The notes: generated by a model not told the origin, from the sequence alone. DNA of 64,000 nucleotides from Octopus sinensis (GCF_006345805.1 NC_042999.1:156426001-156490000), one strand, 5' to 3'. Shown: positions 687 to 53,885, counted from the first letter of the stretch. A program made the numbers and translations.

Positions 687-784
687 CTTCGAAGCCTCTT
701 CATATGTTATTACGAGAGCATTGGGGTTGTCTTTGAGTATTGGCCACCACTGTCTTGTGTATTCAAAATAATCACCCCTCGGGA
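687..784 (-). CDS. SULT-like gene A, coding exon 3 (VPRGDYFEYTRQWWPILKDNPNALVITYEEASK)
   Basis: TTACAG acceptor and GTAGGT donor. 98 nt, the same length as gene B exon 3. Matches the SULT G-S-W-F...W...L...YE region and is in phase with exon 2. Later exons lie left of the window. Confidence 0.9.
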
Positions 785-1024
785 CTGTAACGCCAGAAAA
801 CGAAATTTGTTCACAATTAATGTATACGTTGTGGGACTGTCCATTCGTTTGAAATTGAAGAATTTTTAACTACCCTATAAAAATCATTTACTTTGTGAAA
901 GTGTCTAAGTTTTTTTTTTTATCTCGAAATCTTTCCTTTGCCCAATAACACTTTCATTGTTTCTTCTACGGCCCAACGGGTTACAACATTTACCTGACAA
1001 TTCCCTGACTTAAACATGACTTAC

Positions 1025-1342
1025 CGTTTCCGTCCATGAAGAGCTCAAAGAAACTGTGGAAGTTGCCATCATACTGAATAATTTCGATACTCCACATATG
1101 TCTGTAATAAGAAACTACCACAGACTTAGGGTTACGCGCGATGAAAATGATTTTGTTATTCTTAAGTAATGCTTCAGGCAGAAAGGTAGGGTGTAAGTGT
1201 GTGTTGAGCACCCTTGGAGATGGTTTTGAATCCAGTTGATCTTTAAGCATGAAGTCTATCATATTTTCTTCTTTAATACTGGGAATTCTTTCAGCTTTTC
1301 CATTGACGATCATACTCGTTACCTCCCAGATCCAGTGGGTTC
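1025..1342 (-). CDS. SULT-like gene A, coding exon 2 (catalytic His and 3'-PB motif)
   Basis: ACAG acceptor and GTAAGT donor, 318 nt. Encodes THWIWEV...SPRVLNTHLHP...IARNPKSVVVSYY, the typical cytosolic sulfotransferase core. Confidence 0.92.
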
Positions 1343-1466
1343 CTGTTATTAAAATTTAATACAACGTAATTATATGACCGCAGACTAATGACTGAAACAA
1401 CTAAAGATAAAATATATGATTATGCTATTCTCGACATAATAATGATAATAATAATAATAATAATAA

Positions 1467-1501
<35 letters not shown>

Positions 1502-1502
<1 letters not shown>

Positions 1503-2523
1503 CTGTTCTCAGTATTTAAGGAAGCTGACAAATACAAACAAGAAATCATACCACCCAACAAATATGAAGAAGAAGAAGAAGAAGATGAAGAAACAACAAA
1601 GGCTATAAAACAAATGAAATCCAAACTAAAACTAGAACAGCAAAGACCCATGATAAAACGATGGCAAGAAAAGCCCCTTCATGGTAAATACTGGACTAAA
1701 CTAAATGCAAAAGAAATAGACAAGGAAAAATCCCAGCAATGGTTGAGAAGCTCAGGACTGAAAGCAGAGACAGAAGGATTTTTAATTGCAGCACAAGACC
1801 AAAGCCTCCCCACCAGAAATTACCAAAAACATGTAATGAAAAGAAATATAACAAGTAACTGCAGAATAAGTGGAGATGGACAAGAAACAATAAATCATAT
1901 TATCTCTGGCTGCCCAGTCCTGGCTAAGAAGGAATATATCCACAGACATGACAGAGTTGGGACCTACATACACTGGAAGCTATGCCAACATTATGGAATA
2001 ACAACAGAAAAAAGATGGTATAGGCATACACCAGAAAAGGTCACAGAAAACGAGAAAGCAACCATACTCTGGGATATGCCGATACACACAGATAGAGAAA
2101 TTAAGGCCAACAGACCAGATATAGTTGTCAGAGATCATGAAGAAAAAAAATGCATTCTAATTGATGTATCAATACCAGCAGATGACAACGTGTCTCTAAA
2201 AGAAATGGAGAAACTTTCAAAATACAAAGACCTGGAAATAGAGGTAACCAGAATGTGGAATCTAAAAACAGAAACAATTCCTATCATAGTAGGTGCATTA
2301 GGAATGATAAAAAAATATTCAGACAAATACATAACAAAAACACCAGGACTTACAAACACATATAACATACAGAAAATTGCACTACTAGGCACTGCACACA
2401 TCCTACGCAGAACGCTTTCCATACAATAACCATCAGAGCATCACAACAAATCACAGCACATACCCAAGGCACACAGAGCTGCGCTCGGTTGCGAAGTGAA
2501 AGCACGCTATAAAAATAAAACTA

Positions 2524-2527
<4 letters not shown>
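1502..2527 (+). mobile_element. 5'-truncated R4/Dong-clade non-LTR retrotransposon (CCHC + REL endonuclease)
   Basis: ORF 1614-2429 contains ETINHIISGC...RHD...RPDIVV...IDVSIP...EKLSKYKDL...IIVGALG (restriction-like endonuclease). Flanked on both sides by (AAT)n tracts (about 1437-1498 and 2528-2593). Confidence 0.85.
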
Positions 2528-2580
<53 letters not shown>

Positions 2581-3088
2581 TAATAATAATAATTCCTAAA
2601 GATTTGAACAAATGGATAGAGGAAATAGGTACAAAATGTAGTTTAGTGCAGTTCCAGTAAACAGTATTATTATTAACTTGATCCTGAACGCGGTTGTCTC
2701 GAAATTTGTATATGGTTTCACCAAGCTAAAATCTTTATTGCTTACAATGATGGTCAATAGTTCATAGATGTTTGAGCATCTGTAATCCAAGTAATAGAGT
2801 TTAGTAGACGAGATGATGTGGAAAAACAGGTACAGAAGCGCATTTAGAAGCGATGTCTAGGCTAAAAGAGTATCTGTCCTGTGCGACGATGTTGAAGTTT
2901 TGAGTCTGTTTATGACTTTACTGTAGCATTCAACATATCCCAAAAAGATCTGAAGTAAAAATTTGAGAATTTAGTGATTCAATTTTCGAGATGTTTTGTT
3001 TTTGAATGGGTAAATCACAAGGGGCGCTGTAACTGAAGAGAAAATTTCGGAATATACATGTATGCATACAGACATGCCTGCATACATG

Positions 3089-3181
<93 letters not shown>

Positions 3182-3194
3182 ATATGTGTGTGTG

Positions 3195-3252
<58 letters not shown>

Positions 3253-3459
3253 ATGTTTATTATCACAATATTAAGTCGAAAAACTGAGACATTGAATGTG
3301 GAACACATATATATGTTTACTAATTTATATTATTTATTTATATCATTATGTATATGTATATTTTTATATGTATGAGTGTGAGTATATGCACTCATATGTA
3401 TATGTTGTATTATGGGTATGTACCCACACCCATGTGGGTATATATGTAGACTGATTTAT

Positions 3460-3599
3460 ATTACATAATCTCCGAAGAGGCCTTATGATACTTTTGTAAA
3501 TGTCCCATTTATATCTATATATTGACCTACCATAAAAGGCTAATATTGGTAAAATGAGACATACTTATCTACATGGCCGAAACAGCTGTAAGATGTAAT
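3460..3599 (+). ncRNA. Type I hammerhead ribozyme motif with about 90-nt loop II
   Basis: Stem I ATTAC-ATA-ATCT / AGAT-GTAAT. Core CCGAAGA. Stem II GGCC/GGCC. GAAA. Stem III AC-AGCT-GT. GUA cleavage triplet at 3588-3590. Confidence 0.75.
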
Positions 3600-3983
3600 C
3601 TATACTTATATTTATATTTACTTATATTTATATTCTCTTTTATATATATTCTACTTATTATACAACATTACTCTTTTATGTACACTTTTTTATGTACATT
3701 CCTTTATGTACACTGATTTGTTCTGCTTTTTATATTTAACCCTACAGTCTCTTATGTGGTGGTTTAATAAAGTATGTGATTGAGTATTATCTGGTAATTT
3801 GATTTAGATCTATTTCTCCATTTTCTTATCTTGTATTAGTAATTTGTGGTAAATCATTTTACCTTTGCCTATATAATACAGTAAATGAATTGATTGCATC
3901 GCAGTCATTGGTACTTCACTAACAGTATATTGGAAATATGTTATCCCATGGAGGGTTGTATTTGCAACCCCTATCTCAATTTG

Positions 3984-4016
<33 letters not shown>

Positions 4017-4082
4017 GAACATGTATACGTACAAAAAACATATATGCAATTGGCGTACGTACGTGTGTGTATGTCTGTTGCC

Positions 4083-4154
<72 letters not shown>

Positions 4155-4160
4155 GTATAA

Positions 4161-5748: not shown

Positions 5749-5947
5749 CCGCGGTTGGATATGCAGAAATGACAATGTCATCAGCTCGAAGTGGTAGAGA
5801 GGAGATATTTGCCAAAACAGAGGGAACTGCTGGTAAGGCTGGCAGTGGAATCCCTTTATAGAGGTAGAGAGAAAAGCTATGTCCATCTCTGTCGTAGATT
5901 TTTGTTAGAGAGTTTTCAACTTCTCTTTTGATCATCTCGCTCTCCAT
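5749..5947 (-). CDS. SULT-like gene A, coding exon 1 (ends ...RADDIVISAYPTAG)
   Basis: ATG at 5947, 199 nt, phase-1 GTGAGT donor that splices in frame to exon 2 (YPTAG|THW). Homologous to exon 1 of genes B and C. Confidence 0.88.
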
Positions 5948-8109: not shown

Positions 8110-11100
8110 AGGCTACGTATTAAAATTCCCAGCCCCGCGGGGGAATTATTATTGTGAAACAATTATTGTGGAACTATTTAAAAATACACACAAAAGGCTT
8201 GCGAAGCCAGATTTTTTTGAAGGCTTGTTAAGCCACATCCGGAGATGGATCCTCCTATCTCCTATTCACCTGTATCAGGTGAAGAAAACTCACCGGCGGT
8301 GACGCCGAAAACAGAAGAAGCCCCAGCGAAGAAGTTCGCAGAAGTTGCGGGCAAAAAACAGAAAAAAATTAACACTGAAAAAAAGCAACCTAGAAAAATA
8401 TGCAGCATGTTTGAAAAAGGAAGGTAATGAAGTGACAGTAATACCAGACGTCAGAAAGACAGAGGAAGTAGATAAAAGAAGGATTATTTACAAAACGTAT
8501 AATACGACGATGAAAACCATTCAAAGAGTGAAAGAGAAAAAAATCGAGAATTGTCTAAAGACAATACGGATGGACATCACATAAATACGAGGGACGTTCA
8601 ATAAGTAATGCCCCTGACCCACTTGCAGTTGTGTGATCTAGCTGAAATTTTGCATGTGCAATTATTTATATCTCTATAAGTGGCAAATTACAGCTCTGAA
8701 TTGATTGTCGTTTCTGATTTACAGGTGTTTGAACTGAGTCAAGTGTGAAATGGAGCCTGTTGAGTATCGAGCCGTGATCCGGTTTTGTATTTGAAAGGAC
8801 GCACACCACGGGAGACTTTTGATGAAATGAAAGTAACTTGTGGTGATGATGCCCCATCATATGACCTTGTAAAATGCTGGAATCGTGAATTCAAACATGG
8901 TCGGAACTCTGTGGAAACAGCTCCCAGATCTGGTCGCCCCCATTCTGCCATTGATGAGGCATCTGTCCGTCAAGTTGAGGCTGCCATTTTGGAAGATCGA
9001 CGCATAACTATTCGCCAAATAGCCCATGAGGTCAAGATTAGTACCGGGTCTGTGAAAACTAACATTCATGACCATTTGCATATGCAAAAGGTGTCTGCCA
9101 GATGGATTCCCAGGTTGCTCACACCTTTCCAGAAGCAAGAACGCGTCAAGTGCTCGAGGATGAATTTGGAGATATGCCAAGAAGATGAGTCAAAATTTTT
9201 CAAAAGACTGATTACACAGGATGAAACCTGGGTCCATCACTATGATCCAGAGACCAAAGCACAGTCAATGCAGTGGAAGCACCGTGACTCACCTCCTCCA
9301 AGAAGGCAAGGGTGCTGCCCTCCGCTGGCAAGGTCATGCTCACAGTCTTCTGGGACCAGGACGGACTAGTGATGACAGATTTCCTGGCAAAGGGTACCAC
9401 AATTATAGGAGCCTATTATGCTTCACTTTTGAGGAAATTAAGAGAAGCTATCAATTCAAGAGGCGGGGCAAGATCAGCAAAGGCATCCTCCTCCTGCAGG
9501 ACAACGCTCCGGTCCACAACTCGCGTGTCGCCAGATCAGAAGCACAGGCATGCGGCTATGAAATCTTCCCCCATCCCTCCTACTCTCTTGACCTTGCACC
9601 CTCTGATTTTCATCTCTTCCCAGCCATGAAGTTGTTTTTGAAAGGAAAGCGTTTCCCAGATGATGCAGCCTTGATTTCTGAAGTCACGTCGTGGTTGGAG
9701 ACCAAGGTGGGGTCTTCCACAAAAACGGTCTCCAGAGCTGCATCAAACGATGGGAGAAATGCGTAATTCTGAATGGTTCCTATGTAGAAAAAGACTAATA
9801 ACTGTGCCAAGTTTCGTTGCTCTACTGCTATGGGAAGTGGGTCAGGGGCATTACTTATTGAACGCCCCTCGTAAACTGTGGCAGAAAATTCGGAACGGCT
9901 GAGGTCAGGTTCAGGACAGAAGAGATAGCCAAGAAGCTATCAACTGAACCTCTAAAAGCGGAAAATATAGTCCTCCTCCCCCTGTACAGAGGTAGAAGGA
10001 CCTCGAAGATCAAAATAAACAACATTCCCCCAGAGACAGACACCACATGCCTGGTGGCGGCAGTGATGTTAGGCCCGGAGGACAAGATCACTATCCTCCA
10101 GGCTACAGTAGAGGAGGAGGAGTATTGGCAAGGCCAATGCATCTCAATGGCGATACAGGCGGAGGTTCAGACGTTGGAAGAAATTCCAGAGACATTGAGG
10201 ATCAGCGAGGAGGAGAGGGTGATATTGTTTGTGGAGGGCAGAAAGCCGAGGTGCTTCGGCTGCGGTAAAAAGGGGCACGTGAGAGTGGAGTGCCAACCTA
10301 GGCCGCATGAAGCAGCTGCGCCAGAAAAAGAAAAATCAGAAGCGAAAACACCAGAAACTACAGAATCAACAGAAACCAAAGAAGCAACAGAAACAACAAG
10401 CGGCGAAGAAAAAGAAAAAGAGGGGTGGTCAAAAATCACCATGAAAAAACGGAAAACAGAAACCAGAAAGTGAGCCAAAAAAAAAAAGAAAAGAAACTAC
10501 GAATACATTTATGGCCATTAAGACAGCCAACAACAGGTTGATTAACGTTTTGGCAGCTAATTAGAAAAGTAGATAGAGAAATAGCTAAGTGACCACAGTT
10601 TTACCCGGTCAGCTACAGTGATCATAAAATGGTCACCTGTAAGCTTAACATAGATAAGGTTAATAATAGAGGCTCCGGTTATTGGAAACTTAATACGTCC
10701 CTTTTGGCGATTAAGGAGTACAGAGACCGGATTAGGACTATAATTCAGAGGGCGCTATCTGGTGCCATCATTAATAACAAATGGTGGTATGCCCTCAAGC
10801 GAGCCATCAAATTCGAGTCTATTAGATATAGCATAGGATTAGTGGCTAGAGGGCTAGGAGGGATTCAACTTTAGTTAAGGAATTAGAGGAAGCCATGAGA
10901 ACTGGCTCTGCGGATCAGGTGACGGCCAAGAGACTGGCGTTAAACCAGCACCTCGAGGCCAAACACATGGGCTGCATTGTCAGGGCTAGGATCCGCGCAA
11001 TGGGTTGTGAGGGAATCAACGCCGTGAGATGGGCCCGAGTGGTGGAAGCTCAGCGTGGTAATGATGCCACAATTCGATCTTTGACGAACCAACAAGGTAA

Positions 11101-13560
11101 GTTGATAAACAAACCAGAGGAGATGTGTGAGGCCTTTCAGGAGCACTTCGCTCAGCTTTTCGGTGGAGGCGGCGGACCGGATAGGAGGAGGGACTTTACG
11201 GACCTCCTCGACGGGCTGCCGCGCCTATCGGGGCGAGATGCGGAGGGCTGTGAAGGGCCAATCCCGCCTGAGGAAGTGGCAGAGGCGATGGCGGACTGCG
11301 GCGCGGGCAAGGCGCCAGGTTTGGATGGTCTACCCTATGAGTTATATAAGAGTATGCCAGACTTGTTCGGGCACCTACTGACGGAGGTCTATGCGAACTG
11401 GCAGCAGAACGGGTTCATTCCCAGATCTGTGCGCCGGGGAGTAGTGACGCTTGTCAGAAAGGATCCGAACAAGAGGGAGTGCATTGATAATTTCAGGCCC
11501 ATCACTCTGCTAAACACAGAGTTGAAGATTTTGGCCAAAGTGTTATCGAAACGATTGGCGCGTGTCGCGGATGGTCTGATCGGGGAGGCACAGACATGTG
11601 CCGTTCCCGGCAGATCCATTCAGGATAATCTCCATCTTATGCGGTACACTATAGAGGGGTTTAATAGCGATTCTGGCAAGGGTGGGGCACTGGTCCATTT
11701 AGACCAATCTAAAGCATTTGATAGGGTCGACCATCGCTACCTGGTGTCCGTTCTGGCACAGTTCCGACTGGGCATTGGCTTCCTTAGGTGGATTATTCAA
11801 ATTTACGATAACATCGACTCGGTAGTTCGGGTGAACGGCTTCTTTTCGAAGCTGTTCAACATCAAGCGCTCGGTTCGTCAAGGGTGTCCGCTCTCCCCGC
11901 TTTTGTACGTGGTGGCTCTTGAGCCATTACTGCGAAAACTGAGCGGCATCCCGAGACAGCCAGGTTATGGAAAATCGGTGTCAGCTTACGCGGATGACAT
12001 CACCATCATCGTAACCGAAATGGATCACCTACAGAGGGTAGGCAAGGCCATAGAGGTTTACAAGACGGTGACATGAGCAAAGGTTAATCGTGAAAAGTCA
12101 GTCGGCTTGCAGCTCGGCACCTGGAGAGGCAAGTCGATGCCTCCCGACAGCGTCGTGGGACGTTGGACAGAGGGTCCGATTAAGTTGCTAGGGGTTTGGT
12201 TTGGACCAGACCTCTAAATAGAGAAGAACTGGGGCGAGGTATCGAGCAGGGTGGCTGCAGCAGCCAAGACCTGGTCTTGGCGGTGGCTATCCCTTAAAGG
12301 AAGGGCAGAGATAGCCAATGTGTTTATCGCATCGGTTATCACCTACCGCCTATCTGTCGTTCCTTGCCCTGATTCGTGGTTGATTAAGTTGGAAAGACAG
12401 CTCTTCTACTTTTTGTGGAAGGGCGGGAAACCACTTGTGAAACGCTCTACTTGCTGTCAACAACCGTTAAAGGGTGGGCTAGGGATGCCCTGGCTGATGA
12501 TGCGCAGACATGCGCTGCGGTTAAGACATCTGTGGCTCTACCTTGATGGTGAACGGGTGTGGTCTCCCCTCGGAATACTGATGTTTCCCAAGTTCACTAG
12601 TTTCGGTGGATGGGAAACCTGGCTGAATCGTAGATCGAAACTGGGCACATGGTACACGGAGTGTCGCAAGGCTCTCCTGCTATTCCGTCGTTCGGGCAAC
12701 GCCTGCGGTGGGGGTTCCACCACATTCTTCTATAGAGGGTTAGTAGAGGCGGAATGTGAAGATACCTTAGGGGAAGCCCTAGGTCTCGACGATAATCAGC
12801 TGGCCAGTCTGTTCCAACGTACATACGGGCCGAAGACCCTGGACAACTTCCAGAAGTCTCTGGCATGGCAGTGTTACAGAAGAGATCTACCTGTTCGGGA
12901 TAAACTCGCAAGGCACGGTGGCCAAGACAGTCCGATATGTCCAAGATGCGAGCGGGATAGGGAAACCGTCCCTCACGCTATTGTTCATTGTTCGGTCGTG
13001 TCAGAGGTGTGGGTTTATGCCGAACAGCTGTTGTCAAGCACACGAATAGTACAGCTGTCGACTGAGTCTATTATAAAAATTGACCCACCAGATTTCCTCG
13101 CGAAAGAAGGTAAGAATTGTTTTCTCGTTGTAGTAGCAATTGCGAAAGAGGTAATTTGGAAGACGAGAATGAAAGGTTTACGGTCAGGCAAGTTCATATC
13201 CGGCCCTGGATTGATGAATTATTTCATCTTTCACCTAAAAAGGAAGATAGGGCTGGAGAGAAAATTCCTGACTAAGAGAGTGTATGAAGAACGATGGAAG
13301 GATGTAGCACGAAAGTTGTGAGTGGATGATACCACATAAATGTAAAACAAGACGAAACCAAAGTATCAGTGGTGAGGCGGGGCTCGTGGGGTCCGAGCTA
13401 AAGAGTCATTCTCTTTTAGAGCCTTATTATTTAACACACTCACCGGTAAAATTTCCACTTATTTCTTATTTTTATTTTCTAAAGTTTTCGTTGCGTTTTG
13501 CAACCTTTTCAATAGTCTTGACTCTGTCTGTTATTTTTTATATTTTTAATTTTTTTAATT
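8110..13560 (+). mobile_element. L1/Tx1-clade LINE, decayed, interrupted by a mariner
   Basis: ORF1 remnant 8245-10473 with CCHC knuckle CFGCGKKGHVRVEC. ORF2 remnant about 10550-13321 with APE tail (SDHKMV...GSGYWKLNTSLL), RT (KAPGLDG, FRPITLLN, DQSKAFDRVDH, VRQGCPLSPLLY, AYADD) and C-terminal CPRC...H...C. Stops and frameshifts present. T-rich tail. The 5' boundary is approximate. Confidence 0.9.
8588..9871 (+). mobile_element. Full-length mariner (DD34D) transposon with frameshifted transposase
   Basis: 37-bp TIRs CGAGGG(A/G)CGTTCAATAAGTAATGCCCCTGACCCACTT and TA target duplication (8586-87, 9872-73). Transposase 8750-9798 with WIPRLL, QDETW, QDNAPVH and YSLDLAPSD motifs. Confidence 0.95.
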
Positions 13561-17989: not shown

Positions 17990-20900
17990 TGAAGATCTGC
18001 TTTCCCAACAGCTTTGTCAAAGATAATAGGAGCCTCCTCATCACCTGGAATATCTATTTAACCCAAATATTGGCCTCTGATAGGTACTGCTTTCTAGAGT
18101 CAGGAGTGATGATAATTAACAACTCCAGAATTCCCGAACAACTCCAGAATTCCCGAACCATATTGACCCTGACACGTTTGAATATATCGCGGACTGCAAC
18201 ACGTACACCTGATCCCTTGATGTTCTTACCTCACTATACGTGAAACTAAAGAATGTAGTGCATACACATCACCTGTTATACACTTGCAAAAAGGAGTACG
18301 GACGGAGTTTAGATCAAAACTTCCAGAAGCTCAAACTTTTGGCGAAAGACTGTGGATACAAAGTTGCCTCAGCTACCGAAAATCTCAACGAAGTTGTAAG
18401 AGATGCCTTCATAAGTGGCATGCATTCTAGTAGCATAGGCCAACAGTTGTTGGAGCAGGACAATCTAGATCTCGCCCGAGCCCTCATCCAAGCACGGATG
18501 CCGGAGACGGCAGAGACTCAATCTTCAAGTTACTTAAGGTCAGTCGTTCCTCTTAATGAAGCCTGTGTTGCACGTCCTCCCAGCACGAAACACGACACTG
18601 TACCCGACGCCAATTTATCAGCCGCCACGCCTATGTGTTTGTTCTGTGGCTACAACAGACACCCACACTCCAAGTGTCCAGCTCGGGAAGCGACATGTAA
18701 AGCTTGCAACGAAGTCTGTCACTTCCATCGTGTATGGCAATCGTCTCGCATGAACAAATGCTTTGTTACATACACAGATCCCACATTGTCTGCCATATTC
18801 TCTGCAGCTCTTCCGGCATCATTGTTTTCTGCCGTTATTAAGGTGTACGTAAATGGTATTAAACTCAATGCACTGATTGATAATAGAAGCTCTAATAGTT
18901 ATACATCATCTCATATTGTACACTCACATTGTTGGCGTATCTATTCATCAAACATTCCGATTTCGATGGCCTCTACTACATTGTCTGTGGAGGCGCAATG
19001 GCCCAGTGGTTAGGGCAGCGGACTCGCGGTCATAGGATCGCGGTTTCGATTCCCAGACCGGGCGTTGTGAGTGTTTATTGAGTGAAAACACCTAAAGCTC
19101 CACGAGGCTCCGGCAAGGGATGGTGGTAATCCCTGCTGTACTCTTTCACCACAACTTTCTCTCACTCTTACTTCTGTTTCTGTTGTACCTGTATTTCAAA
19201 GGTGCGGCCTTGTCACTCTCTGTGTCACGCTGAATATCCCCGAGAACTACGTTAAGGGTGCACGTGTCTGTGGAGTGCTCAGCCACTTACACGTTAATTT
19301 CACGAGCAGGCTGTTCCGTTGATTCGGATCAACCGGAACCCTCATCGTCGTAACCGACGGAGTGCTTCCACTACATTGTCAAGCGTTACACAAAGTCACT
19401 GTTTTGCCGAATTGGTCTATCGTGACAATGATTACCCCAATGTGAAGCTTTGTTTTACCTGGGCTTTGTTCAAATGTCTTACTTGCGTACGATTTTTTGA
19501 AACAGTATGAACAAGTAAACATAGCCATACTGATATTGCTATCACCGCAACCTTGAACCAGAATGGACGATGCGTAACCTTCTTCTCCAAAGCGCATACG
19601 CGCAACGAACGGAACCAGTCGAAAAGGAAGTCTACGCCATCATTGAAGCTCTTCGTAAATGGAAGCACTACCTTATCGGAGTTCCTTTTCAGTTAGTAAC
19701 CGACCAACGGTCCATGGCTTTCATATTCAACAACGAAGATAAAGGTAAAGTCAAGAACGACAATGGCGTATTGAGCTATCTTGTTTCAAATATGATGTCG
19801 TTTATCGGCCGGGTAATAACAGAGCTGATGATGCTTTTTCTCGGGGTTATTGCGCATCTTCTACCCTCATGGACCTTACACAGCTCCACGAATCCTTGTG
19901 CCAGCCAGGCGTGACGTGATTGTTCTGTTTCGTGCGGTCAAAGAATCTACCATTTTCCACTCATGACGTAAAATCTGTGACGTCTCAATGTGCCACATGC
20001 GCCGAAATGAAGCCTGATGCTTTGTGTCACTGACAGCCAAACTTGTGAAGGTCACTCAGCCGTTCGAGAGATTAAGCATAGACTTTAAGGGTCCACTCCC
20101 ATCCACTAATCACAACAAATACCTACTTACAATTATCCATGAATTTTCTAGATTCTCATTTGCGTTCACATATTCAGATATATCAGCCGCTATTGCCATT
20201 CCTTGTCTCTGCCAACTATTTCGATTTTTAGACTTTATTTCATCTATTCCGATCGTGACGCTGCCTTCATGTCAGCTGAACTGAGACAATTCCTCCATAA
20301 TAAAGGCATAGCGACCAGTAGGACAATCTCATACAGTCCAGCGAGGAATGTTGAGGTCGAAAAGCTCAATTCAATCTTAAGGAAAACCATTACTTTGGAA
20401 CTGAAGTGTAAGGGATTGAGTGCAAGTCACTGGCAGCGCGTACTTCTTGATGCTCTGCACTCTATCCGTTGCCTCCTCTGTACGGCCACTTACACCACGC
20501 CTCACGAGAGGCTGTTCAGTTTTTACCGCAGCACATCTTCTGGGATCTCACTACCAGAATGGCCAGTGGAGGGTGGATCAGTGCTCCTGAAGAAAATACA
20601 ATCCCGCAGTAGAAAAGGTTGAGTTACTTGAATGCAATCCACTGTATGCTTATGGAGCGGCATGGGGGAAACGGTTTCGTTGAAACATCTAGTTGCGGGG
20701 CATGGGGGAGATACGAAATTTTTCGATACACCGGCCGAGTTTGATACCTCATTGTGCAACCTGTGAACGATCTCAAAGCGGAAACACTGGCAGTTGAAAC
20801 TAGAACCAGTGATATCGATCCTAAAGAAGAAGCTAACAGCTCAAAATTTGATAACCCTGAGCAATTGAAAGCAGGTCAACAGCGTCTACACTCATAGAAC

Positions 20901-32700: not shown

Positions 32701-32727
32701 ACTTTCTCCATTCAGTAATTTTCCACC

Positions 32728-33090
32728 GGAGGCGCAATGGCCCAGTGGTTAGGGCAGCGGACTCGCGGTCGTAGGATCGCGGTTTCGATTCCCAGACCGG
32801 GCGTCGTGAGTGTTTATTGAGCGAAAACACCTAAAGCTCCACGAGGCTCCGACAGTGGTGGTCCCTGCTGTACTCTTTCTCTCACTCTTACTTCCTGTTT
32901 CTCTTGTACCTGTATTTCAAAGGGCCGGCCTTAGTCACTCTCTGTGTCACGCTGAATATCCCGAGAATTGCGTTAAGGGAACACGTGTCTGTGGAGTGCT
33001 CAGCCACTTACACGTTAATTTCACGAGCAGGCTGTTCCGTTGATCGGATCAACCGGAACCCTCGTCGTCGTAACCGACGGAGTGCTTCCA
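32728..33090 (+). mobile_element. tRNA-derived SINE
   Basis: GGAGGCGCAATGGCCCAGTGG head. Near-TSD ATTTTC(C/T)ACC. Confidence 0.9.
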
Positions 33091-34588
33091 TCCATTTTCT
33101 ACCGTTCTCTCTTCATTATCTTTCTGCATATTCATTTATTCTCTCTTTCTGTCTGTTATGTCGCACGTTCAGATGACCTCCACTAAACTTCACTCTCGAC
33201 TCTAGTCTACCTTGACGTCTAGACTTCTCCCTCTATATCTACGTATTGGGCCAGCCTACTTCATCGTCTGGGGCGTCCACACAGCACTCTCCTTCCTTCA
33301 CTTTCTGTGTAATTTTCTATTTTCTTTTCCTTTTACTTTCCTTCTAACTTGTCTCAACTTCTTTTTCTTATTTTCTGTCCTTTTTCCTTTTCACTTTTTT
33401 TTCTTCTCAAATTATTAGCAGTGTAATCATATCAAAGTTGCAACTTTAATAATGCTGAAGGATATGAGGGTTGCATTCATGTTGATAGAGTGGACACTGA
33501 GGTGGGACAAAGATAGAAGAATGTCTTTACGACTGACATCATTTTCTTAAAGATTTTGAAGTTAATCTGAGGCGCAGGAGTGGCTGTGTGGTAAGTAGCT
33601 TGCTAACCAACCACATGGTTCCGGGTTCAGTCCCACTGCCTGGCATCTTGGGCAAGTGTCTTCTGCTATAGCCCCGGGCCGACCAATGCCTTGTGAGTGG
33701 ATTTGGTAGACAGTGTCATTTACGTAAATACCTAATATATTTAAATATCCTGTGAATCATCCCTTTTCGTAAGATATGCGGTGCGATCTGAGTTATTTGT
33801 CTGCTTTATGGTGGAAGTTCAGTGTCCTTGGAGAGGATTGCCTTAATCACGTTGAATCGTTTCTCACCCTCTCGACAAATAGTTGTAAATTGAGTAGAAA
33901 CCACCATGCTTCATCACACACGCACAAAAAAAAAAAAGAGAAGAAAGAAGAAAGAAAAGTAAAGGAAAGAAAAGAAAATACCAATTGATAACATGAGTAA
34001 ATGGTGACTCGTCTGATACCAAATGACAAATAATAAAAGTTGTCAGTCTTTGGTTTAAATGGTTAACATATCTTCACGACGAGTTCAAATTTTGCCGAGG
34101 GCGACTTTGTCTTTCATCCTTTCGGCGTCGATAAAATAAGTAGCAGTTAAACACTGGGGTCGATGTAATTGACTTGCTCACCTCATCTGAAATTGCTGGC
34201 CTTGTGCCAAAAATTTGAAACCAATATTTGTTACGCTGCAATCGTTTTAGTTTCAACACGCGGTCTCAAATGAAACCACTTGCAAATTAGTTGTAAATTG
34301 AGCAGAAACCATCATGCTTCATCACACACGCACAAAAAAAAAAAAAAAAAAAGAGAAGGAAAAGGAAAGAAAAGAAAAGGAAAGAAAAGAAAAGGAAAGA
34401 AAAGAAAATACTAATTGATAACATGAATAGATAGACAACTTTGAAATGACAGTGGTGCCATTCTGCTTTTCATTTATCTTAGTTGCTGTGGAATGAATCC
34501 GAGGTTGGGGAGCATTGTAAATTGTGAGCGAGGTGTAAAAGTAGAAGGCTGATTACCTTTGCCCTGTAGCACACACACACACATACAC

Positions 34589-35120: not shown

Positions 35121-35316
35121 ATGGATAAGAAAGCTGTCGGAACAGTAAATGATGGACTCACTAAAGTATATGACAGAGCTGGAATATCATATTTCGTTTA
35201 TAAATATCGGGGTCACAATATGATTCCTATACCTGTAGTGGCGGAGAATTTAGGGAAATTAAATTCACTCACAATTCGAACTGATGATGTTTTAATATGC
35301 AGTTACCCAGGAACAG
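35121..35316 (+). CDS. SULT-like gene B, coding exon 1 (ends ...RTDDVLICSYPGTG)
   Basis: ATG at 35121 and phase-1 GTAATG donor. Homologous to exon 1 of genes A and C. The intron position matches the conserved SULT intron after the PSB-loop Gly. Confidence 0.9.
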
Positions 35317-36900: not shown

Positions 36901-37240
36901 AAAAAACAAAAAAAAAACGGTGGTATGCTGTTTCCAGCGGCATTTACACAGCATGCCAATGTGACCAGAACGTGAAGACGGACGAAATACTACTAAGCAT
37001 TTTGACGGCGTGCTAACGATTCTGCCAATTGGCCACCTTAAGAAGATAGATAAATAATAAAAGTTTTTTAAAAAGCTATCGGTGACTCAGATGTTTGAAA
37101 AGACTTCTCTAAAAGGTCTCGTTGAGAATTTTATCTCCGAATCAGTTGTGTATAAAAAAAACTATAGCGATGACTTTATGATGCTTTAGTATATTATAAG
37201 TTCAAACTGTAGGCCTTTAGCATTTCTTTATTGGTGAATA

Positions 37241-37623
37241 GTGGAGGCGCAATGGCCCAGTGGTTAGGGCAGCGGACTCGCGGTCGTAGGATCGCGGTTT
37301 CGATTCCCAAACCGGGCGTTGTGAGTGTTTATTGAGCGAAAACACCTAAAGCTCCACGAGGCTCCGGCAGGGGATGGTGGTGATCCCTGCTGTACTCTTT
37401 CACCACAACTTTCTCTCACTCTTACTTCCTGTTTCTGTTGTACCTGTATTTCAAAAGGCCGGCCTTGTCACTCTCTGTGTCACGCTGAATCTCCTCGAGA
37501 ACTACGTTAAGGGTACACGTGTCTGTGGAGTGCTCAGCCACTTACACGTTAATTTCATGAGCAGGCTGTTCCGTTGGTCGGATCAACCGGAACCCTCGTC
37601 GTCGTAACCGACGGAGTGCTTCC
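37241..37623 (+). mobile_element. tRNA-derived SINE in gene B intron 1
   Basis: Full-length. 11-bp TSD ATTGGTGAATA. Confidence 0.92.
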
Positions 37624-38158
37624 ATTGGTGAATAAATTCAGCGTAGAAAGAAATCACGGCAGTAGAGAAAAAAGGGTCATGTCATAGTTGAGGCTGTCAA
37701 AAAAGTGGTTCCATTTTATTTTCGTCAGTCGATTTACTCGAGTAACTGAATAGAAATCTGTAGTTAATACGTTCAACTTACACGTTCAACGATAAATAAA
37801 AGCAATACAAGATTCATGCTGCTCTGTTACAAAATCTCGTATAATCCTGGATTTCCTTGATACTGTTACAGGTGCTTCATATCCTGAGTTTTGTGGTGTT
37901 ATTTTACAGAGTACTTTCTTAGAACTTTACAAATCCTTCAGCAGTTTACATGGTTTATGCAGTTCGTTCAAGCATGAAATCTACTATATTTAGTGGTTGG
38001 CGTTAAACGTATATTTTCTGGTTAACGCATTCTGTCAGCAATAATATCGTCTGGAACCAAATCAGCTGATCAGATCTATCTGGGTATTCATTATATTTCA
38101 TTATAGATTTGCATATGGATTTCTGCTGCATTGGGCGCGCGCGCTTCAATGTGTGTTA

Positions 38159-38661: not shown

Positions 38662-38979
38662 GTTCCCACTGGTTGTTTGAAATGACGAATATGATACTAA
38701 AAGAAAAAAGCGAAAGAATATCGACAATTAAAGAAGACCATATGCTGGAAATTTCTAGACCAGAAATGCTAGATGCCATTGATTCACCTCGCTTACTGCA
38801 TACTCATTTACCTCCTGATATTATTCCCGAGGGTCTTTTGAAAGACCACAAAATTCTTTATCTGACTCGCAATCCTAAAGCTGCATTTGTGTCATACTTC
38901 AGACACATGGCAGCACTTGATGAATATGGATACCGAGGAACTTTGGAAAACTATTTGGAAAAGCTTATGAATGGAGAAG
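38662..38979 (+). CDS. SULT-like gene B, coding exon 2
   Basis: TTTTCCAG acceptor. Encodes SHWLFEM...SPRLLHTHLPP...LTRNPKAAFVSYF. The 3' end is ambiguous: the only GT is at 38979 (phase 0), whereas exon 3 needs phase 1. Confidence 0.88.
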
Positions 38980-38980
38980 T

Positions 38981-38981
38981 A

Positions 38982-39042
<61 letters not shown>

Positions 39043-39046
39043 TTAC

Positions 39047-39079
<33 letters not shown>

Positions 39080-39105
39080 AACCACCACAACTACTACTAC
39101 TACCC
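38981..39105 (+). repeat. (ACT)n trinucleotide microsatellite abutting the exon-2 donor
   Basis: Directly visible. Read in frame it produces a poly-Thr ORF extension. Confidence 0.95.
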
Positions 39106-39349
39106 CCCTTACTATATATATATATATATATATACAGATATATATATGTGTGTATATACATACATATATCCACATACAAAAACATACACACATAAAATAC
39201 CTGTACATACATTTACACCCACCCACATATATCCGCTTGTATGTTCATATATGTAGTATTAAATGATTGTGATCCTTAAAGTAAGATAGGGGAGTTAATT
39301 AAAGATTAAATATTATGATGGAGATAAGTAGGGTTGTTGGGGATTGCCT

Positions 39350-40190: not shown

Positions 40191-40288
40191 TGGTCGGCGG
40201 GCAATTTTTCGAATACACGCATGAAATTTGGCGCCTGATTAAAGACAATCCAAATGCTATAGTAATAACTTATGAAGAAATGAAAAAG
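40191..40288 (+). CDS. SULT-like gene B, coding exon 3
   Basis: TTTTATAG acceptor and GTAAGT donor, 98 nt. Encodes VGGQFFEYTHEIWRLIKDNPNAIVITYEEMKK, paralogous to gene A exon 3. Confidence 0.92.
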
Positions 40289-42639: not shown

Positions 42640-42817
42640 GTTCCCTTTGAAGTAGTGTCTCGCATTGCCAAGTTGCTCGGGAAGTCTATTAGCAACCAAC
42701 TAGCTGAAAACATCATTGACATGTGTTCGTTTGAGAAGATGACATCCGAAAAAAGTACCGAGAGTTCCAACTTTACAAAAGAATTGTTCCGGGACAATGG
42801 ATCTTTTTATCACAATG
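42640..42817 (+). CDS. SULT-like gene B, coding exon 4
   Basis: TAACAG acceptor and phase-1 GTATGT donor. Encodes VPFEVVSRIAKLLGKS...MCSFEKM...GSFYHNG, aligning to SULT I..FLG....TSF..MK...FMRKG. Confidence 0.9.
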
Positions 42818-42933
42818 GTATGTTTACAGTTGATATCAGTATGTTTAAGAGGAATAACAAAATGAAGGTGTGATGTTAGTGCAGTTTCCACGGACATTAA
42901 ATCTATAAGTAAAGCTAAATAACTAATGGGATC

Positions 42934-43316
42934 GAAGCACTCCGTCGGTTACGACGATGAGGGTTCCGGTTGATCCAAATCAACGGAACAGCCTGCTCGT
43001 GAAATTAACGTATAAGTGGCTGAGCACTCCACAGACACGTGTACCATTAACGTAGTTCTCGGGGATATTCAGCGTGACACAGAGAGTGACAAGACCGGCC
43101 CTTTGAAATACAGGTACAACAGAAACAGGAAGTAAGAGTGAGAGAAAGTTGTGGTGAAAGAGTACAGCAGGGATCACCACCATCCCCTGCCGGAGACTCG
43201 TGGAGCTTTAGGTGCTTTCGCTCAATAAACACTCACAACGCCCGGTCTGGGAATCGAAACCGCGATCCTACGACTGCGAGTCCGCTGCCCTAACCACTGG
43301 GCTATTGCGCCTCCAC
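42934..43316 (-). mobile_element. tRNA-derived SINE in gene B intron 4
   Basis: Reverse-orientation full copy of the 37241 family. Confidence 0.92.
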
Positions 43317-43932
43317 TTGATATTTTATTAGCAACTCTATCACAATCGGATCAACTTTGAGGAAACATTTCTGGAAAAGAAGTACCTATGTTTCAAACTT
43401 CTTCAACTTCAACAGGAACAACTATACTGACCAATTTTTACCCCCAAAGATGATGCAACAGTACAAAATGATGATGAAATACTTACAATGTAATGGCATC
43501 AAAACGGTAGGGAAAAAATAACGAGAAATCAGAAATTACTCATTTTGCTCCAGTTACCGCTTTTGCTCCTGCCCCATGTATATAAAATTATTTGTAATTT
43601 AAATAACGTGAAACGCCTTCAACAAAGTATTGAAGTCACATAATGTTCTGGGACATGTCGACAGATCACCTTTTGGTATAAGGCACCTACTTTAACAAAA
43701 TGTTAATTTTGCACATTTGCATAAAACCAGAAGTCTGTAAAGAAGATGGATAGATCTCAGTATGTTATGACTATTTGTTTTATTGCACCACAAAATTTAA
43801 AATAGAAATACAAAGGGACATAACTATATACCAAATTTGAATATGTTTGATAATCTGCTGTTTTTAGCATTCTTTACTGTGATAAATGCTAAAATTGAAT
43901 TCATAATAGAATTTTTAATAATTTTTTTTTAG

Positions 43933-44039
43933 GTCAAATTGCGACTTGGAAAAAGTGGTTAACTGTAGAACAAAGCGAGAGAATAGATGCTTGCATCCAA
44001 TCACAGCTCATTGACCAGGGAATCAATTTAAATTTTTGA
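43933..44039 (+). CDS. SULT-like gene B, last coding exon
   Basis: T-rich AG acceptor. Encodes QIATWKKWLTVEQSERIDACIQSQLIDQGINLNF-stop, matching the SULT C-terminal G..GDWK..FTV.Q.E.FD region. Confidence 0.92.
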
Positions 44040-49905: not shown

Positions 49906-49960
49906 GCGTGAGTGTGTGACAGGAAAGTTTTTTACGACGACGAATATAAGTAGCAGAAAG

Positions 49961-50842: not shown

Positions 50843-51007
50843 CTGTTTTCGTTCCAGCACACGATCTCAGATCAAGTCACTTGCTATGCAAGTACATCTC
50901 TGTAACTATTTATATATTATATATATATATATATAATATGTATATGGTAAAAACAGTAAGATAACAAAAGAAAGAAAGAGACCTCAATATTATGTAAATA
51001 GAGGAAA

Positions 51008-51402
51008 TCTTATATATAAAAGTGAGGTTGTGTGTCTGTCTCCTACGATTTAGATTCCTAACTACTCCCACATTTTGCGGTGCAGTTTAACCAAAACCGG
51101 GTATCTTATAGTCGTGATTCATATCGAGACCGTCTGGGTATTAGCGCGCGTCTACGATGAGTCTACGATTTAAAAAAAAATTACCATCAATTTTTCCCAT
51201 TTTTAATCCATTTTTGACATATATAAGGGAAGAGTAACTCTCTAAAATTTATTATTAAATCTCAGAACGTAAAAAGCTACAGTAAACACCCTCCCCCTTT
51301 GTGGTTAGCCATATTGAGATGGCTATTATACTTTACATCTCTAAAAATGGTTATATAATTATTTCCCTTACAAACCCGAGCAACGCCGGGCGATACTGCT
51401 AG
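51008..51402 (+). mobile_element. Non-autonomous Helitron, immediately followed by a second Helitron-like 5' end (51403 onward)
   Basis: A|TC start and GAGCAACGCCGGGCGATACTG-CTAG|T end. The next element starts TCTTATTATAAAAGGCAG, also seen at 49454 and about 56457. Confidence 0.78.
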
Positions 51403-51916
51403 TCTTATTATAAAAGGCAGATTTTATCTGCCTCCCTTTGTATCTTATAGAAATCTACAATATAGGATTTCTTCAATTACAATTACCTAGCATTTTTAAG
51501 AGTAGAATGCATCGGGTCATGCCAGGTCCAGTTTTTAAAATTTAAACTCCAATTAAGCAAAATTACAGAAAACTCACATTCTGGTGTGTATGTCAAATGC
51601 TTTTCTTAGTCTGGTTTACAGCACACGCAAACGCACACACACAGTGTGCTACGAATAAAGTGAAAGTAATTCAGTGTGTTGACAGGTAGACAATAGAATG
51701 CGGTGACGATGGCGATGTAATATTTGTTTCTGTCTATGACGCTGATAGATACATGAGTAAAATGTATGGGAAGCTAATAGATAAGAGTGAGTGAAAATGT
51801 TCTTGGAAGAGAGTAAATAGCGAGAGAGAGTGATTTGAGGAAGACTTTACATTAAATAACCGTAGTGGCTTGTGTTAGTAATAAAGTAAACATACACTCA
51901 TACATACATACATACA

Positions 51917-51948
<32 letters not shown>

Positions 51949-52037
51949 CACACACACATACACACACACATACATACATACACACACACATACATACATA
52001 CACACATACATACATACATACATATACATACATACAT

Positions 52038-52074
<37 letters not shown>

Positions 52075-52293
52075 GTATTGAAGCTTGAGAACAATCAGAT
52101 ACATTTGCAACACATCTGTTGAAAATATTATTGTTCACACACATACATATACATATATACATACAGACAGACAGACAGATAGACACACACACACACACAC
52201 ACATGATCCAGCATGCCACAACCTCAAGCTGAAACATATAAAAGAATAACAGAATATAATGTGTGCATGTGTGTGAGAGAGAGAGTGTGTGTG

Positions 52294-52325
<32 letters not shown>

Positions 52326-52399
52326 TGTATATATATATAATAATGCGGTTTTTTCAACAGCTTGAACTAAAAGTCAGAGGGGAATGGGATAAACTACTT

Positions 52400-52940
52400 A
52401 TATTAACTTGCTATAAAAGCAGGTAGTAATTTTATCTTGTCCTTATTCATAGTGCAAGTTTTGAAGAGTGCATTTCGATTTTAACAGCTATTTGTTTCAA
52501 AGCTATGTTGGAAGTAACAAAGGAGCATATCTGGCATATTTTACTTTATGAGTTCAATAAAGACAACAACGCAACGGAAAGTACAAGAAATATTAATGCA
52601 GTATATGGGGATTGGACAATAAGCGTAAGGCAGTGTCAATGGTGGTTCCAGAAATTCCGAGCCATAAACTACAGCCTAGAAGACGAGCCTCATCCTGAAA
52701 GATCTGTAGAACTCGACAAGGACATCCTGAAAACCCTGGTGGAACAAAATCTCATCGTAACTGTTGAGGAACTAGCAGAGAAGCTTGGATTTGGTCATTC
52801 AACCATCATTGAGACCTGTGTGCTATCGGAAAAGTCAGGAAATTGGGTCAATGGGTTCCTCACGAACTTTCCGAGTCTAATTGCATGCAGAGAGTGAATG
52901 TATGCTTTTCTTTGCTGTCACATCTCACCACTACTGCGCT
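52400..52940 (+). mobile_element. Mariner 5' fragment (HTH region), duplicated at about 57510-58045
   Basis: ORF HIWHILLYEFNK...QWWFQKFRA...LEDEP...TVEELAEKLG...QWVPHEL. Confidence 0.85.
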
Positions 52941-53686
52941 ATGTATATCTTATAATATAAAAATGTAGTTGTGTGAGTGTCTGTCCCCTTCGATTTAGAT
53001 TCCTAACTACTCCCACATTTTGCGGTGCAGTTTAACCAAATTCGGGTAGCTTATAGTCGTGATTCATATCGAGTCCGTCTGAGTATTAGCGCGCGTCTAC
53101 GATGAGTCTACGATTTTAAAAATAATTTAACATCATTTTTTATTCCATTTTAATGCATAATTTTTCGTGTGTCGATGGCGGCGGAGTTGGCGTCCACGCT
53201 CATACCTGCACCTGTGGGGAAGGGAGTGTAAGGAAATCAACGTCGTAATGCGTTGTCAAGGAGACCAGCGTTCTTTTAGAACAACGACTATATCTTTTTC
53301 AAGACTTAATTGACAAGTAGAAACCTCTGTTTAAACCAAAAATCACCGATAACTTTTATATATTCATAAGGAGATTTCAAACAATTTATCTATTGCACAA
53401 TCATCATATCACAAAACATATCAATTCTGCTAGAAACAAGCAACGCACAGCATTAAGGTCATTGATAAAATTCGTACATAGATAAGGAGTCGTTAAACAT
53501 CTAGTCTATTGCACAATCACCATATCAAAAGTTACATCAAAACTGCCCAACAAACCCACTTATTTTACACACGTGACTTTCACTAACCAGGGACCATATA
53601 AAATAATAATTTTTTAATGCGAAGAAAACTTTGAAGCAACGACAGTAACATCGAAGTTGTCAACATCAGTGAATGAAGAAAAGATC

Positions 53687-53885
53687 ATGGATCCTGAAGA
53701 AATAAAAAAAGAGATCGAAAGTAATTTTACACAATTCTTCGGCAAAGACGGTAATGCCATGCCAGTTTATAAATATAAAGGCCATAATATACTTTACTTG
53801 GAAATGGCATCATCAGCTTTATCCAAACTAAATACCGTGAAATTTAGACCGGATGATGTTTTGCTTTATACATATCCTGGAACAG
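53687..53885 (+). CDS. SULT-like gene C, coding exon 1 (ends ...FRPDDVLLYTYPGTG)
   Basis: ATG at 53687, 199 nt (identical length to gene A exon 1), GTAAGA donor in phase 1. No further exons were recognised before 64000. Confidence 0.85.

Follow-up and report, generated by a model that had tools for sequence, protein, structure and literature searches.

Cytosolic sulfotransferases (SULTs) bind their cofactor, 3'-phosphoadenosine 5'-phosphosulfate (PAPS), through a 5'-phosphosulfate-binding (PSB) loop, 45-TYPKSGTT-52, which binds the 5'-phosphate, and through the motif RKGxxGDWK, which binds the 3'-phosphate (PMC6969939). Catalysis uses a His that acts as the base, a Lys that cleaves the bond between the sulfonate and 3'-phosphoadenosine 5'-phosphate (PAP), and a Ser that positions this Lys (PMC8134075). 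The Lys or Arg of the PSB loop is treated as indispensable in all PAPS-dependent sulfotransferases. Here we describe a cluster of three SULT paralogs, genes A, B, and C, in a 64,000-nucleotide (nt) stretch of Octopus sinensis DNA (GCF_006345805.1 NC_042999.1:156426001-156490000; "the window" below refers to this whole stretch). These genes belong to an old, expanded animal clade that has been kept by selection without that basic residue. Residue numbers follow human SULT1A1.

The octopus proteins share with enzymes of the SULT1 type (SULT1C2, 1A1, 1B1, and 1E1; PDB 3BFX, 1LS6, 3CKL, and 1BO6), and with homologs from Lingula, Haliotis, a chiton, and an oyster, the Pfam family PF00685, a fold with a template modeling (TM) score of about 0.8, and a length of about 290-300 amino acids. 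Also common to the SULT1-type enzymes and the Lys-less clade are His108, Arg130, Ser138, Trp53, Tyr193, Phe229, Gly259, Trp264-Lys265, and the KxxxTVxxxE motif, and the Lys-less clade and lophotrochozoan SULTs alike have a loop of the type G-[ST]-H-W. Unlike the SULT1-type enzymes, the clade has neither Lys nor Arg at position 48, its A-like members have no Lys258, and its B/C-like members have neither Arg257 nor Lys258; GDWK is replaced by [SAD]TWK, and clade-specific Arg residues are found at B84 and B146 (numbered on protein B). A second comparison is offered by mouse SULT2A8 (PDB 7EOV), in which the canonical His is lost (Leu99) and His48 of the K-S-G-T-H-W loop lies 4.7 Å from the PAPS sulfonate; its K44A mutant has 10-30% activity at pH 5.5 (PMC8134075). 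The octopus proteins resemble SULT2A8 in having a rewired triad, and the position of its His48 is that of their invariant His52. However, SULT2A8 keeps the Lys, has lost the canonical His, and has demonstrated activity, whereas the octopus clade shows the reverse pattern of residues and is known from sequence.

SULT4A1 (PDB 1ZD1), an orphan brain SULT with no established substrate, likewise combines a conserved SULT fold, kept under strong constraint, with doubtful catalytic competence. It aligns only to residues 38-233 of B, and its 3'-phosphate-binding (3'-PB) region differs. SULT4A1 retains the PSB-loop Lys and is encoded by a single-copy vertebrate gene rather than a tandem family. The cephalopod S-crystallins, which derive from glutathione S-transferase, are an enzyme family that expanded in tandem and lost its catalytic residues. 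Unlike these, the octopus clade keeps the active-site and cofactor contacts other than Lys48, Arg257, and Lys258, and it is a poor fit to purely structural recruitment. The S-crystallins had been offered as a precedent for co-option in the original prediction, which was made from the DNA of the window; we found nothing in support of this analogy and no evidence of expression in the lens or of other high-abundance expression.

A coleoid SULT clade without the PSB-loop lysine

The column of Lys48 holds Thr in gene A and Gly in genes B and C (loops AYPTAGTHW, SYPGTGSHW, and TYPGTG, respectively), as the original prediction had read it. When B and A were compared with the solved structures of SULT1C2, 1A1, and 1B1, the PSB loop aligned without gaps, and measured against TYPKSGTTW it keeps its length, Gly50, and Trp53 and has lost the basic residue. 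The second cofactor motif is altered as well, which the original prediction had missed. In gene B, FMRKGxxGDWK has become FYHNGQIATWK, with Arg257 replaced by His, Lys258 by Asn, and GD by AT; the longer motif RKGxxGDWKxxFT is not found in B, which has FYHNGQIATWKKWLT. Exons 4 and 5 of gene A fall to the left of the window; at the orthologous locus of Octopus bimaculoides (L002), exon 4 carries FFRSG, and an Argonauta relative of A has YRSGKASTWK. Other motifs are in place, in agreement with the earlier reading of A and B. The catalytic base His108 is present in both (THL) and is His in 31 of 31 clade members, the 3'-phosphate contacts Arg130 and Ser138 are found within RNPKSVVVS in A and RNPKAAFVS in B, and the dimer motif KxxxTVxxxE reads KKWLTVEQSE in B, its K270, T274, V275, and E279 being invariant in 15 clade members. 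Gene B matches PF00685 (Sulfotransfer_1) with an E value of 4.8e-52 over residues 55-290 and 45 solved SULT chains with a best E value of 2e-37, the top relatives being SULT1C2, 1A1, and 1B1. Its AlphaFold2 model has a mean predicted local distance difference test (pLDDT) score of 84.9 and a predicted TM score (pTM) of 0.86; confidence is low only over residues 1-9 and over 250-265, the loop formerly holding RKG, and Foldseek returned SULT1E1 and SULT1B1 as its best matches (TM 0.78-0.83). By predicted fold and most motifs A, B, and C thus appear to belong to the SULT superfamily, but two defining motifs fail, namely, Lys48 and RKG.

HMMER, run exhaustively against 1.84 billion representatives, returned 4675 matches, the best 150 of which were aligned together with the cluster members and human SULT1A1. 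A separate profile search added many further octopus paralogs; a word-indexed search had given 1 match per single query. In the 90 nearest canonical relatives, the residue at position 48 is always basic (82 Lys, 8 Arg); 88 of them have Arg257, 86 have Lys258, and 82 have Asp263. All 31 members of the Lys-less clade are non-basic at position 48, and the absence of Lys48 from the cluster is, judged by this alignment, not a chance pattern. Among the sequences aligned, the combination of a non-basic position 48 with otherwise intact catalytic motifs was found exclusively in cephalopods: Octopus vulgaris, O. sinensis, O. bimaculoides, Argonauta hians, and Sepia esculenta, with at least 10 distinct Lys-less proteins in each Octopus species. 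In neighbor-joining (NJ) trees built on simple distances, the Lys-less proteins were monophyletic with 93% bootstrap support, and with 84% when the PSB and RKG columns were left out to avoid circularity. The loss first noticed in three genes of the window is real, old, and common to the whole clade.

The clade divides into nested sub-clades with NJ support of 84-99.7%. Proteins of the P0010/P0197 type have YP[AS]SGTHW together with an intact RKG..GDWK (RKG in 11 P0010-type sequences), P0006 and the A-like group have YP[YT][SA]GTHW and R[TS]G..[AS]TWK, and the B/C-like group (support 99.7%) has YP[GA][AT]GSHW and H[NST]G..[DA]TWK (H[NST]G in 16 sequences). This branching order reads as a stepwise erosion in which Lys48 was lost first, then Lys258, and then Arg257. 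P0197 (YPASGTHW, RKG) was recovered in contigs from the Sepia esculenta transcriptome sequencing runs SRR19578110 (PMC10141105) and SRR23936169 (PMC10571815); it is 69-70% identical to the octopod P0010-type proteins, and Argonauta and Octopus are 86% identical. Since Lys-less P0197 occurs in Sepia esculenta, the loss of Lys48 is older than the split between Octopodiformes and Decapodiformes. As reconstructed from the trees and alignment, which show a coleoid clade expanded in tandem in octopods, Lys48 was lost once, before the divergence of octopus and cuttlefish. Position 48 was then free to vary (A, S, Y, T, and G), the lineage leading to A lost Lys258 (R-S/T-G), and in the line to B and C Arg257 disappeared as well (H-N/S/T-G).

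The Lys-less genes of O. bimaculoides form two clusters on one chromosome (CM046603.1), with the orthologs of A and B at 123.08-123.17 Mb and the second cluster at 157.13 Mb. This second cluster (L003; P0163 and P0192) consists of B/C-like Lys-less paralogs. P0163 was considered as the ortholog of C and ruled out, as it lies in the second cluster, 34 Mb from the A and B orthologs.

The remainder of the active site is conserved. Gly50, His52, Trp53, His108, Arg130, Phe229, Gly259, Trp264, and Lys265 are invariant in the 31 clade members; position 138 is Ser in 28 and Thr in 3, and position 193 is Tyr in 29 and Phe in 2. Across 19 non-redundant members, mean entropy is 0.39 bits in the other PAPS-contact columns versus 1.36 bits elsewhere (Mann-Whitney p=3e-5), and canonical enzymes have the same contrast (0.83 versus 2.45 bits). 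Position 48, at 1.96 bits, is among the most variable columns. Where GDWK is altered, Asp263 has become Thr and Gly262 has become Asp, Ala, or Ser, and the adenine-stacking residues are kept. Two Arg residues are particular to the clade. The first, at B84, occurs in 18 of the 19 Lys-less proteins compared, with Tyr, Phe, or Thr in the relatives; the second, at B146 (SULT1A1 position 141, one helical turn past Ser138), is present in all 15 proteins without Lys258 and is Asn in the subfamily with an intact RKG. The nucleotide pocket therefore seems to be preserved in the Lys-less genes, and conservation of the PAPS contacts and of His108 to the degree seen in active enzymes argues for a working nucleotide and acceptor site rather than structural recruitment. 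From the missing Lys, the original prediction had proceeded to a non-canonical function; this step was not established, with His108, His52, Arg130, Ser138, Trp53, Tyr193, Phe229, and Gly259 conserved as in active enzymes. The appearance of a fully dead SULT domain is illustrated by P0060, an unrelated protein of 889 amino acids from a Logan contig, which has three tandem SULT-like domains with Met or Asn at position 48, Gln or Glu at 108, and Ala at 193, and whose C-terminal part gave no alignment to SULT1A1. To judge from these residues, it is an independent and far more degenerate case, and the cephalopod clade is unlike it.

Junctions, selection, and transcripts

The intron between exons 1 and 2 is in phase 1 and interrupts the codon of Gly50. 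Exon 1 ends in TAT CCA ACC GCG G/GT in gene A, TAC CCA GGA ACA G/GT in gene B, and TAT CCT GGA ACA G/GT in gene C (the slash marks the end of the exon), and exon 2 of gene A begins with GA ACC CAC TGG. The Lys48-equivalent codon belongs to exon 1, two codons upstream of the junction, and an alternative junction therefore cannot restore the Lys. A splice variant that does so was considered and ruled out on this ground, and mRNA contigs of the paralogs agree. All junctions of gene A are GT-AG, and its frame is open over the 205 amino acids seen. Gene B is complete in the window, with five exons encoding 298 amino acids, and its protein is identical to O. sinensis XP_029656503. A 171-amino-acid query from its two 5' exons matched CAI9719099.1 (298 amino acids, "estrogen sulfotransferase-like [Octopus vulgaris]") at 100%. 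For gene C, no later exons were found between 53886 and 64000 by tblastn with A and B at E values up to 50; the remainder of the gene is either outside the window or absent.

The original prediction had described conserved exon lengths (199/196/199, 318, and 98 nt), conserved splice sites, and open reading frames. The lengths held, as did the open frames of gene A and of the single C exon. The splice sites did not hold throughout, and the frame of gene B, open over 298 amino acids, needs a non-canonical donor at exon 2 in the present assembly. The donor (38976-38985) reads GAAG/TAACT in the window versus GAAG/GTAACT in the deposited O. sinensis sequence, which is one G longer, and the nearest GT (38979-80) would shift the frame. 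The missing G adjoins an (ACT)41 microsatellite, and either a 1-nt (homopolymer) assembly error or a real null allele of the sequenced animal would account for it. The microsatellite begins 3 nt past exon 2 and is followed by a (TA) repeat, and the frame of exon 2 remains open across the (ACT) repeat, read as poly-Thr, as far as 39263. The deposited O. vulgaris model CAI9719099, which has EVIGGQ and not EVVGGQ, could be reproduced at 298 amino acids only with a CT..GG intron (38982/40194). A junction of this type was set aside because of that intron, and the O. sinensis-type junction was used instead.

The ratio of nonsynonymous to synonymous rates (dN/dS, or omega) was estimated by the Nei-Gojobori method on ungapped exon alignments, with 12-37 substitutions per comparison. 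For gene A and its O. bimaculoides ortholog (138 codons), dN was 0.038 and dS 0.100, giving an omega of 0.38 (binomial test against neutrality, p = 0.03-0.08). Gene B had an omega of 0.50 overall in the same species comparison, and its exons behaved differently. Exons 2-5 had 9 nonsynonymous and 11 synonymous substitutions (omega 0.18, p=3e-4), whereas exon 1 (35121-35316 versus 3449-3644 of the O. bimaculoides locus L004) had 16 nonsynonymous substitutions against 1 synonymous, with an omega of about 4.9 that does not significantly exceed 1 (p=0.08), and the two ratios differ (Fisher p=0.0017). On these counts, the N-terminal segment of B appears to be neutral or adaptive while the core is constrained, and the 16:1 excess of replacements fits diversifying ligand recognition, which may be expected of an enzyme or a binder alike. 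Against the deposited O. sinensis sequence, gene B had 1 synonymous and 0 nonsynonymous differences in 897 nt; the 10.3 kb around it, with 0.82% mismatches, would predict about 7.4 (Poisson p=0.005). Exon 1 of gene C is 94% identical, without gaps, to a genomic contig of another octopod (L001), with an omega of 0.11 (p=6e-4); its flanks are 76-78% identical with many indels. A cuttlefish-type pair had an omega of 0.20. Gaps in the O. bimaculoides orthologs (A exon 1 and most of B exon 2) are runs of N and not lesions and are thus uninformative on pseudogenization. The purifying selection that had been predicted was therefore recovered (0.38 in A, 0.18 in exons 2-5 of B, and 0.11 in C exon 1), and the omega values, well below 1, show A, B, and C to be constrained genes rather than decaying pseudogenes.

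No transcript contigs of A, B, or C were found in the contig collection that yielded mRNAs of the paralogs. Among the latter, P0181 (YPGAGSHW, HSG) is represented by its full 300-amino-acid coding sequence in a 1,213-nt contig of SRR3401912, an octopus metatranscriptome, and P0197, also with a full coding sequence, appears in 83 blocks of the collection, each with contigs of <2 kb, the ten shown being about 1.1-1.3 kb. In the mRNA contigs of both, the Lys-less loop spans the spliced junction of exons 1 and 2. These paralogs are transcribed and correctly spliced, and their mRNAs lack the Lys; for the family, this answers the first refuting condition set by the original prediction, a transcript junction that brings the Lys back. 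Several deposited models, from the second O. bimaculoides cluster and also from O. vulgaris, connect exon 1 straight to exon 3 (YPGA/VPYGDYF) and skip the exon with His108. At the expected site of the skipped exon, L003 has a run of N (10902-13377), and the joining may be an assembly or annotation artifact rather than a real isoform.

Mechanism and competing explanations

We hypothesize that the members of this clade are Lys-independent sulfotransferases that are probably slow or pH dependent. We give this explanation a probability of roughly 45% and favor it over non-catalytic binding. In this scheme, the proteins would still bind an adenine nucleotide cofactor, which may be PAPS, PAP, or a less charged relative, and the acceptor hydroxyl would be held at His108. 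The leaving group and the sulfonate would be stabilized by His52, which corresponds in position to the catalytic His48 in mouse SULT2A8, and the clade-specific arginines may help, that at B residue 84 having been gained with the loss of Lys48 and that at B residue 146 with the loss of Lys258. The conserved pocket and the signature of selection suggest that the Lys-less proteins are most likely neither inert scaffolds nor pseudogenes.

A number of points weigh against this proposal. To our knowledge, all characterized sulfotransferases carry Lys or Arg at position 48. The role given to this Lys is the cleavage of the sulfonate-PAP bond itself, and the K44A mutant of mouse SULT2A8 is inactive at pH 7.5 (PMC8134075). 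The subsequent disappearance of Lys258 and Arg257 resembles the progressive decay of cofactor binding that might follow a loss of catalysis. No single residue has taken the place of Lys48, the 3'-PB loop is among the parts modeled at low confidence, and His52 is also present in 82 of the 90 canonical relatives and is thus not a specific compensation. The Lys-independent activity of A, B, and C is, moreover, proposed from sequence comparison.

The best-surviving alternative, which is tentative and which we nevertheless take seriously, is that the proteins are non-catalytic pseudoenzymes. Once the loss of Lys48 had abolished sulfuryl transfer, the SULT fold would have been retained to bind, buffer, carry, or regulate small ligands of a hydroxylated or hydrophobic kind, PAP(S), or both, with His108 serving only as a hydrogen bond partner of the ligand and with the tandem paralogs diversifying in specificity. 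A universally basic residue has been lost throughout the clade, which is the loss of an essential residue expected of a pseudoenzyme, and the long retention of the genes under purifying selection, acting on the core, suits this explanation equally. The stepwise loss of Lys258 and then Arg257 is the main argument for a binder; the lack of constraint at position 48 agrees with it, as does the contrast between 16:1 in the N-terminal exon of B, which in SULTs lies near the acceptor pocket, and 9:11 elsewhere, which fits diversifying ligand recognition. However, the nucleotide contacts, His108, and Ser138 are conserved as in active enzymes across a deep clade of many paralogs, the oldest subfamily has retained the full RKG..GDWK since before the octopus-cuttlefish split, and the truly degenerate P0060 has lost His108 too. 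This pattern of conservation argues against filing the genes as pseudoenzymes yet.

It is less probable, and in our view unlikely, that the clade turned to another cofactor or another chemistry, using a less charged donor, such as adenosine 5'-phosphosulfate (APS) or a nucleotide without the 3'-phosphate, or catalyzing another reaction, such as hydrolysis or the dehydration carried out by retinol dehydratase. Three positive charges that contact phosphate (K48, R257, and K258) are gone from the B/C type, in which Gly262 and Asp263 have also changed and the adenine-stacking residues remain, and SULT-fold enzymes with other chemistry exist, with retinol dehydratase (1FMJ) among the structure matches. 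Against this, the 3'-phosphate binders Arg130 and Ser138 are retained, and positive evidence for another ligand is wanting; retinol dehydratase itself retains the Lys. That the genes are decaying pseudogenes, or their loops an artifact of a wrong junction with the Lys restored in transcripts, is very improbable and for the family largely refuted: the G/TA donor of B, the single C exon with its 10.1-kb segment missing from the O. sinensis contig, and the paralog models without exon 2 speak for it, but the omega values of 0.11-0.38, the near identity of B to the O. sinensis gene, a C exon far better conserved than its flanks, O. bimaculoides gaps that are N runs rather than lesions, the place of the Lys-equivalent codon within exon 1, and the Lys-less paralog mRNAs all speak against it.

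Stated for the family as a whole, our proposal, which we hold to be rather doubtful in so general a form, is that coleoids possess a multi-gene SULT-fold family without a basic PSB residue, kept since before the octopus-cuttlefish split, whose members either perform a Lys/Arg-free transfer with His52, His108, and the new arginines or are pseudoenzymes that sense PAP(S) or other ligands. If the Lys-independent sulfotransferase explanation is correct and the proteins are active, a Lys-independent variant has to be added to the textbook mechanism; should they be inactive, no earlier pseudoenzyme family among the cytosolic SULTs is known from our literature searches, and this would be the first. 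In either case, the ordered erosion of the 3'-phosphate motif with the rest of the active site intact is a natural experiment on the contribution of the Lys. Databases already contain genes of the family, which automatic annotation has called, for example, "estrogen sulfotransferase-like" or "sulfotransferase 1C2-like." Our literature search found nothing on Lys-less cephalopod SULTs, on the stepwise erosion of their motifs, or on their coleoid-wide distribution, and no paper that joined "cytosolic sulfotransferase" with "pseudoenzyme" or an inactive SULT with the catalytic lysine and PAPS.

Among the 20 nearest named relatives, no canonical Lys-bearing cephalopod SULT was found, all being from brachiopods, gastropods, chitons, or bivalves. 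It is a possibility that octopods have few or no cytosolic SULTs outside the Lys-less family, which would then have a role, for example, in the metabolism of steroid or bile-acid-like hormones in the optic gland. In the optic glands of brooding octopuses, "sulfotransferase 1C2" is among the cholesterol-metabolizing enzymes that rise and has been read as steroid sulfating (bioRxiv 10.1101/340984). This inference is unsafe if the gene so named belongs to the Lys-less clade.

Gene models and surrounding repeats

Gene models were built from six-frame motif searches, tblastn, and inspection of each exon junction, and their coordinates are given in Table 1 with those of the repeats. The window has a GC content of 37.9% and is rich in repeats and retroelement fragments; a tRNA scan of it found none.

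Table 1. Exons and motifs of genes A, B, and C and other features of the window
Feature	Position	Strand	Length	Remarks
Gene A exon 1	5947..5749	minus	199 nt	Met1 to first base of Gly67; YPTAG; donor GT
Gene A Lys48-equivalent codon	5755..5753	minus		ACC (Thr)
Gene A exon 2	1342..1025	minus	318 nt	(G)THW...; AG acceptor, GT donor
Gene A THL (His108 equivalent)	1202-1194	minus
Gene A RNPKSVVVSY	1136-1107	minus
Gene A exon 3	784..687	minus	98 nt	VPRGDYFEYTRQWW...ITYEEASK
Gene B exon 1	35121-35316	plus	196 nt	YPGTG; donor GT
Gene B Lys48-equivalent codon	35310-35312	plus		GGA (Gly)
Gene B exon 2	38662-38979	plus	318 nt	(G)SHW...; donor G/TA in window
Gene B THL	38802-38810	plus
Gene B RNPKAAFVSY	38868-38897	plus
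Gene B exon 3	40191-40288	plus	98 nt
Gene B exon 4	42640-42817	plus	178 nt	ends ...FYHN(G) at RKG site
Gene B FYHNGQIATWK	42805..43952	plus		RKG site
Gene B exon 5	43933-44039	plus	107 nt incl. stop	(G)QIATWKKWLTVEQSE; ATWK for GDWK
Gene B KKWLTVEQSE	43950-43979	plus		dimer motif
Gene C exon 1	53687-53885	plus	199 nt	YPGTG; donor GTAAGA
Gene C Lys48-equivalent codon	53879-53881	plus		GGA (Gly)
zf-RVT open reading frame (ORF)	1614-2429			weak; A intron 1
Helix-turn-helix (HTH) transposase-like ORFs	8785-9766			between A and B
Reverse transcriptase with zf-RVT	10895-13321	plus		long interspersed nuclear element (LINE) type; between A and B
Segment absent from O. sinensis contig	24411-34129		9.7 kb	contains the element below
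Long terminal repeat (LTR)-retrotransposon-like element	26117-31981
Direct repeats of LTR-like element	26117-26705, 31393-31981		589 bp	100% identical
Integrase-core ORF of LTR-like element	27805-28335	minus
DUF7041 gag-like ORF of LTR-like element	30399-31274	minus
(ACT)~41 microsatellite	38982-39103
(TA)~28 repeat	39113-39169
Segment absent from VCDQ01000490	45258-55366		10.1 kb	contains C exon 1
Repeat pair bracketing C segment	49031-49721 / 56087-56728
Repeat pair bracketing C segment	51402-53289 / 56456-58389
Dispersed repeat	18987-19370, 32728-33091, 37240-37625, 42934-43317		~385 bp	90-96% identity

Exon 1 of gene C lies in a segment that the O. sinensis contig VCDQ01000490 (L005) lacks; in this contig, 45257 is followed directly by 55367. 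Repeats bracket the segment, and a 1.9-kb direct repeat, 93.7% identical, is found on both sides of C exon 1. The missing segment could reflect a collapse of the O. sinensis assembly or a real structural difference. The other absent segment, which contains the LTR-retrotransposon-like element, looks like a young insertion. The dispersed repeat has the size of a short interspersed nuclear element (SINE), and two of its copies are found within introns 1 and 4 of gene B.

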